From: Styela clava
Taxonomy: Eukaryota
NCBI RefSeq assembly: GCF_964204865.1
Contig: NC_135263.1
Span: 19,468,001 to 19,532,000, forward strand
Reading direction: 5' to 3'
DNA length: 64,000 bases
Shown here: positions 40,771 to 45,900 of the stretch, in pieces
How positions within the stretch are numbered: position 1 is the stretch's first letter
Layout of the letters: each line of letters opens with the position of its first letter
Notes under the pieces: generated by a model
What the model was told of the DNA's origin: nothing
Seen by the model: only the letters and a program-made list of their open reading frames with translations
Databases searched by the model: none
Position numbers and translations under genes: made by a program

Positions 40771-41246
40771 ATCTATAACTTCATGAACACACAATTTTGT
40801 GCGACGGCGGATATGTATTTAGTATTATTGGGCCACATACTGATCGTCGTTTATGTAAATACCCTCTATAGTTCTCATTAGGGTACAAACAATAGGAATT
40901 CCCGGCCAAGAGTTCTAATCGAGGTAAATAAACAAGTACATGTAGCCATATTAGCGAGTGGCTATTATTATCATTGAAGATTTTATTATGAAACCGATGA
41001 ACAGCAAAAATGAAATTATGCAAGTGATGTACTCAATAGAACATCATCCAACAATAAAGTTGGAAGTTTAAAAGAATTTGTCGTATCAAAACAACGACAC
41101 GAAGGAATTGGAAACAAATAAAACGTTGTCAATAGGTAAAACAAATAAATTAATGCTGATCTCATTTCAGCAAGAGATCAGTGATGATGGGTAAGGCAAT
41201 TTGGACACAAAATCCCTACTCATGATGAAGTATCATCACACATACG

Positions 41247-41433
41247 TGTGGTGTTAGTATTTCTTTACAGTGTAATTATTAGATAAACAATGTACTCTTG
41301 ATTGCTCTGGTTCTGTCGTACTGCACACTTTACTGTTTGCGTGTTATTCTATTGTTTACAGTGTTAAGTTGTGGTAGTGGTGTTCTTATGTTTAATAAAG
41401 CCTAGAATCGGTATCCTGTTATCTTTCATAACA
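41247..41433 (+). repeat. 5' LTR
   Basis: TGTGGTG...CATAACA, identical to 45188-45374; AATAAA at 41394-41399. Confidence 0.96.
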
Positions 41434-41434
41434 A

Positions 41435-41448
41435 TTTATTAAACATAA
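41435..41448 (+). promoter_or_regulatory. Non-tRNA primer-binding site complementary to the element's own LTR
   Basis: TTTATTAAACATAA is the exact reverse complement of LTR 41386-41399 (TTATGTTTAATAAA); no TGG follows the LTR. Confidence 0.7.
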
Positions 41449-41466
41449 CTTAACGAACCAACCACA

Positions 41467-44400
41467 ATGGATAAAGTTTTAAAGCCTGAGAAACTAGACA
41501 CAGATCCTGATACACGTGACGCGGAATGCGAATGGCTGCATTGGCAAAAGACATTCGAAAATTTCTTGGAAGCTTTACCCACTGAAGGTCTGGATAAATT
41601 GAGAGTATTAACAAACTATGTGTCTCCGAGAACTTATAGATATATTAGAAATATCACAACTTATAATGAAGCCATAGATACGCTGAAAGGGATTTTTGTA
41701 CAGCCAAAGAATGAAATATATGCACGTCATATGTTGGCCACGCGATCCCAACAAATTTCTGAGTCAGTTGCTGAATATTTAAGAGCATTGACAGAATTGA
41801 GCAAAGATTGTAACTTTCAGAACGTATCTGCTAAAGAATACCAGAATGAATATATTCGGGACTCTTTTACACGTGGCTTGAATTCCAGTTGGATACGCCA
41901 ACGACTGCTGGAGAATAAGAAATTGACACTGGACGAAATGGTTGATCAAGCCAAATCATTGGAAACTGCCGTTCGAAATTCACAATCTTATGCTATAAAC
42001 GAAAACGCTTCCGTCGGAGCAGCACCTTCAACGATACAATCTAACAATTTCGATGTTGGATCGGTGCCAGATAATGCAGCGATGACTATTAGAAGTAAAT
42101 GCTTTTTCTGTGGTAATAGTAGACACCCACGATCGAAATGCCCAGCTCGGGAAGTAGTCTGTTTCAAGTGTCAAAAGAAAGGACATTTTGCAAAGGTCTG
42201 TCGCGGAAGAACTATTTCGAACAATGACTCCAGCAGTCGCATTGACATTTCAGCAATGATACCACATTCAACATTAGCTACTATTCATGACAAATCTTAT
42301 ACTCATGTTGGATACGTTCCGTCTACATTACGACAAGCCACAGCCTTGGTAGAAGTCGGTCAACGAAAAGTACGAGCTTTGTTCGACAGTGGTAGTACGG
42401 AAAATTATATTCACCCAAGGCTGGTAAAATCTCTTAGGCTCAACGTTCGTCCGACAAAGAATGTCATTTCCATGGCATCGTCTAAATGTTCAGTAGAAGT
42501 TCTTGGATGTACTGAAATGGATTTATACTATAATAATCATAAATATTGCGGAGTTAAGTTTGGTGTAATCGACAGCTTATGCGCTGATATGATCCTCGGA
42601 CTCAATTTCCAAACCCTGCATAAAAGTGTAAGATTTCACTACGGTGGTAAAAAACCTGAATTATCAATTTGTGGTTTCTCGTCATTGAAAATAACCCCAC
42701 CTGAACCATTCAAACATTTAACTGCGGACTGTCATCCAATCGCCACTAAATCGAGAAGATATTCACACGAAGATAGATTATTCATTCGAGACGAAGTAGC
42801 AAGACTTCAGCGAGAAGGAATTATCGAAACATGCCTTTCGCCATGGAGAGCTCAAGTCGTTGTGGTTAAAGCAGAAAATCGAAAGAAACGTTTGGCAATT
42901 GATTACTCGCAAACTATTAACAAGTTCACTTTATTGGACGCTTTCCCATTGCCAAACATTTCAGAGTTAGTGAATGAAATCGCACAATATCGAGTTTTTA
43001 GTACTGTTGATCTCACTAGCGCTTATCATCAAGTTCCACTGAAACACCAAGACAGAGAGTTTACCGCGTTTGAAGCCGAGGGAAATTTATACCAATTCAC
43101 AAGGCTGCCTTTCGGAATCACAAACGGGGTCTCTTGTTTTCAGCGGATAATGAAGCAGCTCGTGAAAGAAGAACAACTGCGAAGAGTTTTTCCATATTTG
43201 GATAACATAACTATTTGTGGAATGACTAAAGAGGATCACGACAAAAACCTGGCTGCTTTCCTGGAATCTGCAAAACAACGAGGATTGATTTTTAATGAAT
43301 CAAAAAGTATATGGACTACTCGAACATTGCCGATTTTAGGATATCAAATTGCTGAAGGTGAAATTCGTCCAGATCCCGAAAGATTAAAACCTTTACGCCA
43401 ACTTCCAATACCATCAAATTCTAAAGAATTGAGCAGATGCATGGGATTCTTTTCATACTATTCTAGATGGATTCCAAACTTCTCAAATAGAATCAGATCA
43501 TTAACAAAATCGACCTCTTTTCCTCTTACTGACACTGCTATTGGAGCTTTTTATGAACTAAAACAGTTAATAGAAAATGCTGTTCTCATTGCCGTTGATG
43601 AAAATATTCCATTTGAATTGGAAACTGATGCTTCAGATATTGCTATAGCAGCGACATTAAATCAATCTGGTCGTCCCGTGGCATTTTTTTCACGTACATT
43701 ACACGGCTCTGAACTTAAACACCCTTCGGTCGAAAAAGAAGCTATGGCCATAGTTGAAGCAGTACGACATTGGCGTCACTTTTTAACAGGAAGACGTTTC
43801 ATCATGAAAACAGATCAGAAAAGTGTCTCTTACATGTTTGATTTGCGCCACAAAGGTAAAATCAAAAATGAAAAAATAACAAGATGGAGAATTGAGCTAT
43901 CCGGTTACTCTTTCGATATCGCATACAAACCAGGCAAAGACAATGTTGCACCAGACACTCTATCGAGGATTTCATGCGCTCTTCCTTCTACTAATATCCT
44001 CACTAAATTACATGATGCATTATGCCATCCAGGTATATCTAGATTCGCTCATTTTGTTAAGGTCCGTAATTTACCTTATTCGACTGAAGACGTTAAGCGA
44101 ACTGTCTTGAATTGCCGTGTATGCAGAGAGATAAAACCTAAATACTATCGGCCTGAAGTAGGAACTCTTGTGAAAGCGACTCAGCCCTTTGAACGTTTAA
44201 GTATTGACTTCAAGGGACCTCTTCCGTCGAACAATCGCAACAAATATTTTCTCTGCGTAATTGACGAGTTTTCACGATTTCCCTTCGCTATTCCAACACC
44301 TGATGTTTCGACCGCCAGTGTCATAAAAAGTCTAACTCCATTGTTCGCTGTATTTGGAATGCCTGCTTACATACATACTGATCGTGGTTCGGCTTTCATG

Positions 44401-45141
44401 AGTTGTGAGTTTAAAAGATTTTTGCAAGAAAAGGGTGTGTCTCACAGTAGAACAACTCCTTACAATCCTTCGGCGAATGGTCAAGTAGAAAGGTGCAATG
44501 GTACAATTTGGAAGGGAATAAAACTTGCTTTAATGTCAAAAGGTTTGCCAATTGAATGTTGGCAAGACGTTCTATTAGATGTTTTGCATTCCATCAGATC
44601 ACTATTGTGTACTGCAACAAATGCAACACCACATGAACGGTTGTTCAATTTTGCAAGAAGATCTACCACAGGATATGCCGTTCCAACGTGGCTGACAAAT
44701 TCTAAAATTGTTCTTCTCAAGAGACAGATTAGAAGAAACAAATCTGATCCATACGTCGATGAAGTGGAACTTCTAGATGCGAACAGACATTACGCTCATA
44801 TTCGGTATTCAGATGGTAAAACCTCAACAGTATCAACAAAGCATCTTGCACCGTGTGGTGATGGTACGTCGTTTGGAAGTGAAAATAATGGAAGTTCCTC
44901 CGATAATCAACATTCTCAATTACCTGTAAAGCAGGCTGATACAGCAGATTCCGACTATGTACCAAAAATATCGCATCCCGTTATCAACCAATCAGAAATT
45001 CAAGAAGGGGAAGAAAAGTCAAATATTCCTGGTGATGATGAAAAACGCGAAACATCCCCAATGAAGAAGATAGACACCCCGGCTCCTAGGCGTTCTACTA
45101 GAGAAAAACGTCCAATTGATCGTTTACATTACTATGAGTGA
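41467..45141 (+). CDS. Gag-Pol polyprotein (1224 aa): gag with 2 CCHC knuckles, protease, RT, RNase H, integrase
   Basis: CFFCGNSRHPRSKC and CFKCQKKGHFAKVC; LFDSGS; DLTSAYHQ, LPFG, YLDN; TDASD, EKEA, TDQK; HHCC and DDE integrase motifs; PR-RT-RH-IN order; no chromodomain or env. Confidence 0.96.
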   Translation: MDKVLKPEKLDTDPDTRDAECEWLHWQKTFENFLEALPTEGLDKLRVLTNYVSPRTYRYIRNITTYNEAIDTLKGIFVQPKNEIYARHMLATRSQQISESVAEYLRALTELSKDCNFQNVSAKEYQNEYIRDSFTRGLNSSWIRQRLLENKKLTLDEMVDQAKSLETAVRNSQSYAINENASVGAAPSTIQSNNFDVGSVPDNAAMTIRSKCFFCGNSRHPRSKCPAREVVCFKCQKKGHFAKVCRGRTISNNDSSSRIDISAMIPHSTLATIHDKSYTHVGYVPSTLRQATALVEVGQRKVRALFDSGSTENYIHPRLVKSLRLNVRPTKNVISMASSKCSVEVLGCTEMDLYYNNHKYCGVKFGVIDSLCADMILGLNFQTLHKSVRFHYGGKKPELSICGFSSLKITPPEPFKHLTADCHPIATKSRRYSHEDRLFIRDEVARLQREGIIETCLSPWRAQVVVVKAENRKKRLAIDYSQTINKFTLLDAFPLPNISELVNEIAQYRVFSTVDLTSAYHQVPLKHQDREFTAFEAEGNLYQFTRLPFGITNGVSCFQRIMKQLVKEEQLRRVFPYLDNITICGMTKEDHDKNLAAFLESAKQRGLIFNESKSIWTTRTLPILGYQIAEGEIRPDPERLKPLRQLPIPSNSKELSRCMGFFSYYSRWIPNFSNRIRSLTKSTSFPLTDTAIGAFYELKQLIENAVLIAVDENIPFELETDASDIAIAATLNQSGRPVAFFSRTLHGSELKHPSVEKEAMAIVEAVRHWRHFLTGRRFIMKTDQKSVSYMFDLRHKGKIKNEKITRWRIELSGYSFDIAYKPGKDNVAPDTLSRISCALPSTNILTKLHDALCHPGISRFAHFVKVRNLPYSTEDVKRTVLNCRVCREIKPKYYRPEVGTLVKATQPFERLSIDFKGPLPSNNRNKYFLCVIDEFSRFPFAIPTPDVSTASVIKSLTPLFAVFGMPAYIHTDRGSAFMSCEFKRFLQEKGVSHSRTTPYNPSANGQVERCNGTIWKGIKLALMSKGLPIECWQDVLLDVLHSIRSLLCTATNATPHERLFNFARRSTTGYAVPTWLTNSKIVLLKRQIRRNKSDPYVDEVELLDANRHYAHIRYSDGKTSTVSTKHLAPCGDGTSFGSENNGSSSDNQHSQLPVKQADTADSDYVPKISHPVINQSEIQEGEEKSNIPGDDEKRETSPMKKIDTPAPRRSTREKRPIDRLHYYE

Positions 45142-45174
45142 AATGTTTATTAAACTTTTGTTAAATAATCTTTT

Positions 45175-45186
45175 AGGAGGGGGAAA
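45175..45186 (+). promoter_or_regulatory. Polypurine tract
   Basis: AGGAGGGGGAAA ending 1 nt before the 3' LTR. Confidence 0.9.
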
Positions 45187-45187
45187 T

Positions 45188-45374
45188 TGTGGTGTTAGTA
45201 TTTCTTTACAGTGTAATTATTAGATAAACAATGTACTCTTGATTGCTCTGGTTCTGTCGTACTGCACACTTTACTGTTTGCGTGTTATTCTATTGTTTAC
45301 AGTGTTAAGTTGTGGTAGTGGTGTTCTTATGTTTAATAAAGCCTAGAATCGGTATCCTGTTATCTTTCATAACA
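45188..45374 (+). repeat. 3' LTR
   Basis: Identical to the 5' LTR. Confidence 0.96.
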
Positions 45375-45900
45375 ATACGTGATACTTCGCTCGACAGAGA
45401 CTTATCCAAATCAATCAGAGCAAAATTCATCTAGTAGAGCATTTCTAAACCCAGTCAAAATTGGAATAAAATAACGGGTTTACGAATCTAAGAGAAGGAA
45501 GAAAATATATTTTCACCACGAGATTATTAAAATCAATCAGAGTAAAATTCACCAACAGATTTTTGCCTCAACAACATTATTTTTTATGTTAGGTGAACTA
45601 TCACTGAAAGATTCTGTTTCTCGTTCAAAGGATTTCCTTAACTGATGTGATACTTCAGGATACATCAATTTAAGTTGTTGTATGAGGTGATTGTGTCTTT
45701 TGTCTTTAAACTCATCTGCGAAAAAATATGAAATAATAAATTTGATAAAATGCACGGTATAATTAAGTATTATTATGTGTATTTTGTACATGTAAATGTA
45801 TTTGTCTACACGACAGGTGACAAACTTTGTAGCGTTACTTAATGACCAAGAGCCTTCCAAAAATTTGGTCTGTGTTACGGACTGCTAATAATCAAATTTC

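Follow-up and report, generated by a model that had tools for sequence, protein, structure and literature searches.

The 64,000-nucleotide stretch of the genome of the ascidian Styela clava analysed here (assembly GCF_964204865.1, NC_135263.1, positions 19,468,001 to 19,532,000; hereafter the window, with positions counted from its first letter) contains a complete long terminal repeat (LTR) retrotransposon on the forward strand, at positions 41247–45374. In the following, we describe the anatomy of this element, the covariation between its LTR and its primer-binding site across related families, and a possible mechanism for the start of reverse transcription. The element is quite probably a recently inserted, intact Ty3/gypsy retrotransposon from a compact, chromodomain-less animal clade (about 4 kb, one open reading frame), which would prime minus-strand DNA synthesis with its own RNA and not with a tRNA.

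The element and its primer-binding site

The two LTRs are 187 bp long with TG..CA ends, lie at 41247–41433 and 45188–45374, and are 100% identical. They are bordered by a 5-bp target-site duplication, ATACG, at 41242–41246 and 45375–45379. Between the LTRs, a single open reading frame (ORF; 41467–45141) encodes 1224 amino acids in the order Gag, protease (PR), reverse transcriptase (RT), RNase H and integrase (IN). It contains two CCHC knuckles in Gag and Pfam matches to an aspartic protease (residues 295–381), RVT_1 (473–628), RT_RNaseH (713–814) and rve (905–1001). A polypurine tract, AGGAGGGGGAAA (45175–45186), is located one base upstream of the 3' LTR, and similar G-rich tracts are found at the 3' LTR of related families. 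The domain order PR-RT-RNase H-IN, the TG..CA LTRs, the duplication and the polypurine tract identify the element as a member of the Ty3/gypsy group (Metaviridae), and the solved structure closest to the ORF is the Ty3 polyprotein (E = 8.5e-73). The closest database protein, with 92% identity, comes from S. clava, and the genome contains at least 40 LTR copies of the family with 90–100% identity. The element is thus intact, as the original prediction had proposed, and the predicted lack of a chromodomain extends beyond it: no PF00385 match at E ≤ 0.1 was found in the ORF protein or in 24 relatives, and no chromodomain was present among the precomputed domains of 120 relatives. A protein atlas sets the ORF protein near 'K02A2.6-like' clusters, which serves only as a lead for clade placement, and the originally proposed Mag-like affinity is accordingly a candidate. 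A further lead towards the Mag lineage or the Cigr-1 clade is the compact single-ORF layout of about 4.1 kb in a tunicate host; Cigr-1 of Ciona is about 4.2 kb long. The names of the protein clusters were uninformative on the identity of the clade.

The 5' LTR terminates with CA at 41432–41433 and is followed by a single spacer base, A41434, and then by TTTATTAAACATAA (41435–41448), which begins exactly at the canonical position of a primer-binding site. These 14 nt are the perfect reverse complement of TTATGTTTAATAAA within the same LTR (41386–41399), which we consider a putative self-primer and which includes the hexamer AATAAA (41394–41399). A41399, the 3' end of the LTR arm, pairs with the first base of the primer site. 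A TGG-type primer site is absent: TGG occurs nowhere between the LTR end and the gag ATG (41467). Both the complementarity with its coordinates and the missing TGG had been noted before and hold. With the paired 3' arm in the place of the minus-strand primer site and a tRNA-type site missing, self-priming similar to that of Tf1 is the best reading of this arrangement.

No tRNA gene is found in the 64-kb window, and no Rfam family matches the primer-site region. In the 377-Mb genome, TTATGTTTAATAAA occurs at 115 places, compared with 107 places for its non-complemented reverse. Since this AT-rich word is as frequent as its control, its genome-wide count is uninformative on a tRNA source, and these counts, together with a G+C content of 36% in the window, indicate that short AT-rich words carry little information in this host genome. 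None of the 63 scored Rfam tRNA genes overlaps with the 100 of these 115 places that were compared. Most of these tRNA genes belong to a single tandem array (C2:15,882,721-15,941,977 of the genome), which dominates the scored Rfam tRNA matches and in which at least 36 genes, most of equal score, lie on one strand over about 60 kb.

Covariation between the LTR arm and the primer site

A protein search of the genome revealed three further families with 67, 54 and 51% RT-IN identity to the window family. The LTR sites of the four families, 14–16 nt long, all differ in sequence, and each is matched perfectly by the primer site of its family in the same arrangement. In the window family, TTATGTTTAATAAA is followed by GCC in the LTR, and A plus TTTATTAAACATAA follows the LTR end. 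The LTR site of family B is ATTTAAGTTGAATAAA, followed by GCC, and that of family C is TTTTAGTTTCTTAAA, also followed by GCC; their LTRs end before A plus TTTATTCAACTTAAAT and A plus TTTAAGAAACTAAAA, respectively. Family D carries TTTAAGTTAATAAA followed by AGCC, and its LTR end is followed by AT plus TTTATTAACTTAAA. Among 11 window-family copies with a 5' LTR and leader (90–100% identical), only one-sided changes are present, all in decayed copies, and the copies within the family are therefore uninformative on covariation.

To test the 14-bp helix as a named structure across families, 16 distinct families were aligned with plain MAFFT. In this alignment, 94.6% of the helix cells pair, 10 of the 14 pairs have changed on both sides, and the covariation score is 0.553, as compared with 0.124 after shuffling (0 of 500 shuffles as high). 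Sliding the partners by 1–3 columns leaves only 22–50% pairing, and none of 100,000 swaps of primer sites among families attains the complementarity observed, a result that is the same for positions 6–14 alone, with the conserved first five left out. The helix is kept over approx. 13 bp and decays at positions 14–16. The position of its inner end is constant: ..(U/A)UAAA closes the LTR arm and is directly followed by (G/A)CC, and TTTA opens the primer site one base past ..ACA, the single spacer A between ACA and TTTA being nearly invariant. A covariance model built from the same alignment (R1) gives one match per element, at the junction of 5' LTR and leader, and the only additional matches are weaker ones on the reverse strand at the same coordinates. 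In the window, R1 has a single match, at 41384–41450.

Compensatory change is also visible between two elements that are 98.4% identical over 4.2 kb. Compared with L067, both LTRs of L066 carry a G>T exchange and its primer site carries the complementary C>A exchange, and because both LTRs carry the change together with its match, this compensated variant has passed through retrotransposition. In the family of L066 and L067, the interval between LTR and ATG measures only 16 nt (1 + 13 + 2 nt), and since the complement takes up 13 of these, a second primer site cannot fit.

Beyond the genome, relatives with 47–61% identity are present in a sea anemone, a nematode, an isopod, whose record carries a possible-contamination flag, and a damselfly. 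An alignment of 25 relatives, used to scan metagenome contigs, provided 80 loci. More than 20 families in metagenome contigs have the same geometry with different sequences (36–68% protein identity). The design is present in every metagenome locus with a 5' end, down to 36–37% protein identity, and loci that are more distant still are too fragmentary to show where the signature stops. R1 added nine more families, and in total the signature is found in at least 25 related families, of which at least 16 show covariation at the site homologous to 41386–41399. The distance from the helix to the gag ATG varies between 3 and 60 nt, and TGG does not occur between the LTR and the ATG in any recovered family. 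The absence of complementarity in related families had been named in advance as decisive against the original prediction; LTR and primer sites covary in every related family recovered.

Several observations on the copies themselves are added here. Many LTR copies of the window family (L013, L020-L023, L026-L030), including those at C3:5.18 Mb, C5:5.36 Mb and C16:21.11 Mb of the genome, have identical flanks, with ..ATGTTTGGT before and TTGGTATTATATATGG.. after the LTR, and a spacing of 2055 bp. They look like one solo LTR (duplication TTGGT) that came to lie in a repeat unit of approx. 2 kb and was multiplied by later amplification of this unit, and not like many independent insertions. Among the relatives, some proteins are deposited as 'MAG: DDE-type integrase/transposase [bacterium]' and 'UNVERIFIED_CONTAM' Armadillidium vulgare (P0016, P0074; cluster members), and environmental metagenomes contain many contigs of about 4 kb that hold whole elements. 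These are evidently eukaryotic retroelements that were binned or labelled as prokaryotic or contaminant. One metagenome contig of 3885 nt (L069) is circularly permuted, i.e. its 3' LTR continues into the primer site and the ORF start and overlaps its own beginning, as is expected from an assembly collapse of two LTRs or from a one-LTR circle.

Leader fold, proposed priming and alternative explanations

Fold prediction for the RNA 41360–41475 gives −29.2 kcal/mol (z = −3.5), and the segment 41386–41470 is predicted to form a three-way junction. It consists of the 14-bp long-range helix, a hairpin that directly abuts it (GCC-UAGAAUC-GGU, 41400–41412), a second hairpin that closes on the last LTR base (UGUUAU-CUUUC-AUAACA, 41417–41433) and the one unpaired base in front of the primer site. 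Stems that begin with the first base past the LTR arm (+1) are enriched over 15 families, with 63 bp against a null mean of 41.4 and 0 of 2000 shuffles as high. Hairpins that look comparable to the second one, as candidate counterparts, are seen in several other families. The loops closed by the primer helix are short (35–66 nt). The extended pairing between TTGTGGT (41369–41375) and ACCACAA (41461–41467), which had been suggested to prolong the helix, is present and part of the minimum-energy fold, but it is of marginal significance against shuffles in the window family (p ~0.05) and lacks conservation across families (combined p = 0.13). It had also been suggested that the stem could mask the 5' poly(A) signal. 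This may be a side benefit where the paired site ends with AAUAAA or AUUAAA, but it cannot be general, because the sites of several families end with GUUAAA, CUUAAA or UUUAAA.

By analogy to Tf1, priming could proceed as follows. The RNA would start at or upstream of approx. 41386, and an LTR-derived segment of about 13–14 nt ending with ..UAAA (41386–41399) would pair with the site one base past the LTR (41435–41448), with the two hairpins at the inner end of the duplex completing the three-way junction. Cleavage at UAAA^GCC (41399/41400), i.e. where the helix ends immediately before (G/A)CC in all families, would be executed presumably by the element's own RNase H, as in Tf1, and would leave a 3'-OH on A41399. 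RT could then extend through A41434 and 34 further nucleotides back to G41400, and the resulting strong-stop DNA, very short at about 35 nt, would be transferred to the 3' R region. Later, plus-strand strong-stop synthesis would copy the RNA primer, and the primer site would be partly re-templated from the LTR in each cycle; near-perfect matches in young copies would follow from such re-templating. With respect to the primer, all that the covariation shows is that the RNA includes 13 nt or more upstream of the cut. If the self-priming reading holds, strong-stop molecules of the window family should consist of about 13 nt of RNA joined to 35 nt of DNA.

Several points weigh against this reading. 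Pairing past the primer site is not conserved, and the three-duplex 'pretzel' of Tf1 is not reproduced in full: the primer helix and the abutting hairpin are conserved, but the duplex between the LTR and the region downstream of the primer site is not. A TATA-like motif at a consistent distance upstream of the LTR site was not found across families. The host tRNA comparison covers only the 63 scored genes and 100 of the 115 places of the 14-mer, and the RNA start, the poly(A) site and the cleaved primer are putative, being deduced from sequence. Finally, the catalytic motif of the RT is YLDN instead of YxDD (43195–43206; ORF residues 577–580), and its fourth position is occupied by N in 17 of the 24 aligned relatives and by D in the other 7. 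The identical LTRs and the many near-identical copies nevertheless argue for recent activity of the window family, and the YxDN form is common in the clade, including elements that look recently active.

That the 14-nt complementarity arose by chance in an AT-rich genome can be rejected with near certainty. The word itself is common, as its 115 occurrences and the 107 of its reverse illustrate, but a position-specific null gives no match of the LTR reverse complement longer than 12 nt at approx. 59,000 window positions outside the element, and the match recurs with different sequences in at least 25 families. An alternative that accepts the helix is that it represents a conserved RNA structure with another task, such as packaging or dimerisation, hiding of the 5' poly(A) signal or control of gag translation, while a host RNA still serves as primer. 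Covariation proves pairing, not priming, and both the frequent AAUAAA or AUUAAA at the end of the paired LTR site and the position of the helix, 3–60 nt from the gag ATG, would suit such tasks. We nonetheless consider this explanation unlikely: the paired 3' arm, one base past ..CA, occupies precisely the minus-strand primer position common to all LTR elements, the sites of several families contain no canonical poly(A) hexamer, and neither TGG nor space for another site is present in any family, with only 16 nt between LTR and ATG in L066 and L067. In addition, the presence of four different sites among four families of one host makes a shared host primer improbable.

It is also conceivable that the primer derives from the element's own sequence but acts in trans, being provided by a second packaged genome or by a separate short LTR transcript. 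Pairing in cis and in trans looks the same in sequence analysis, and the loops of 35–66 nt and the three-way junction fit a cis arrangement without proving it. Trans priming appears very unlikely, however, as the hairpin abutting the primer helix is conserved and the spacer is compact and fairly constant; both features fit an intramolecular junction like that of the Tf1 leader (PMC10085805).

The preferred reading is thus priming by the element's own RNA in cis, and the proposal that self-priming may operate outside the chromodomain-bearing group is supported by the strong covariation. A wider proposition is that self-primed reverse transcription is the ancestral, clade-wide mode in a widespread chromodomain-less clade of animal Ty3/gypsy elements (tunicate, cnidarian, nematode, crustacean, insect), with an architecture of its own, in which the primer would measure about 13 nt, the cut site would be conserved as UAAA^RCC and the leader would form the three-way junction. 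Here, we regard the chances for and against as evenly balanced. If correct, this mode would either have originated independently of Tf1/sushi, or self-priming would be much older in the Metaviridae than thought.

Relation to known priming systems

In Tf1, the LTR segment complementary to the primer site has a length of 11 nt. Within a leader folded into several duplexes, a 5' segment of the Tf1 mRNA anneals to the primer site and becomes the primer by cleavage (PMC4600332, PMC10085805). Tf1 is the sole element with demonstrated self-priming, and predictions exist for Tf1/sushi chromoviruses, the plant Tcn1 elements and the plant copia lineage TAR (PMC10085805, PMC6317226). The searchable literature regards self-priming as a hallmark of these Tf1/sushi chromoviruses, beside Tcn1 and one plant copia prediction. 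It contains no mention of self-priming in Mag, Cigr-1, or tunicate and other animal non-chromovirus gypsy elements; older subscription work (Cigr-1, Jule, SURL, Butler et al. 2001) was beyond reach, and an earlier description is therefore possible. If the reading is correct, a large chromodomain-less animal clade would widen the known range of tRNA-independent priming. We further infer that such elements would in principle be immune to defences aimed at tRNA primer sites, e.g. by 3'-tRNA fragments. Self-priming would also account for the possible omission or misclassification of these elements by LTR-finding pipelines in which a tRNA primer site is mandatory.

Among animal elements, Cer1 of Caenorhabditis elegans resembles the window clade in being a non-chromovirus Ty3/gypsy element, but it has a TGG-type tRNA-Pro site directly past the LTR (PMC3315495), which is lacking in the window clade. 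C. elegans elements are placed under Mag in an annelid survey (PMC8220671). The GalEa elements of aquatic animals, like the window clade, have no conventional tRNA primer site, and a hairpin has been suggested as their primer site ('conserved hairpin site'); in contrast to the window clade, they belong to the Ty1/copia superfamily, and no tie to any described priming model has been established for them (PMC6934838). The TAR lineage of plant Ty1/copia elements (Houba, Osr-1) is predicted to self-prime, and the proposal thus exists outside the chromoviruses (PMC6317226), but TAR differs from the window clade in its superfamily, its copia domain order and its plant hosts.

The closest parallels are found in the chromoviruses. 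For sushi-ichi, other vertebrate Tf1/sushi elements and the plant and fungal Tcn1 elements, self-priming is proposed from the complementarity between LTR and primer site alone, as in the window clade (PMC6317226, PMC10085805), but sushi-ichi and Tcn1 carry the chromodomain that the window clade lacks. Tf1, Tf2 and Tj1 of fission yeasts, of which Tf1 is the one with demonstrated self-priming, likewise have no tRNA primer site, and their LTR-adjacent site complements an upstream LTR segment of similar length (about 13 nt in the window clade) (PMC4600332, PMC10085805). In both groups, further duplexes flank the primer helix at the cut point and single-ORF layouts occur. The flanking structures differ, since the window clade has two local hairpins in a three-way junction, whereas Tf1 has two extra duplexes that use sequence adjacent to the primer site, the outer of which is not conserved in the window clade. 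Different from the Tf1 group, the window clade shows a primer 3' end and cut site conserved as UAAA^RCC, has no chromodomain and resides in animal hosts of several phyla. The window element therefore lacks the chromodomain by which the Tf1/sushi group is recognised, while its sequence suggests that it works like a member of that group.

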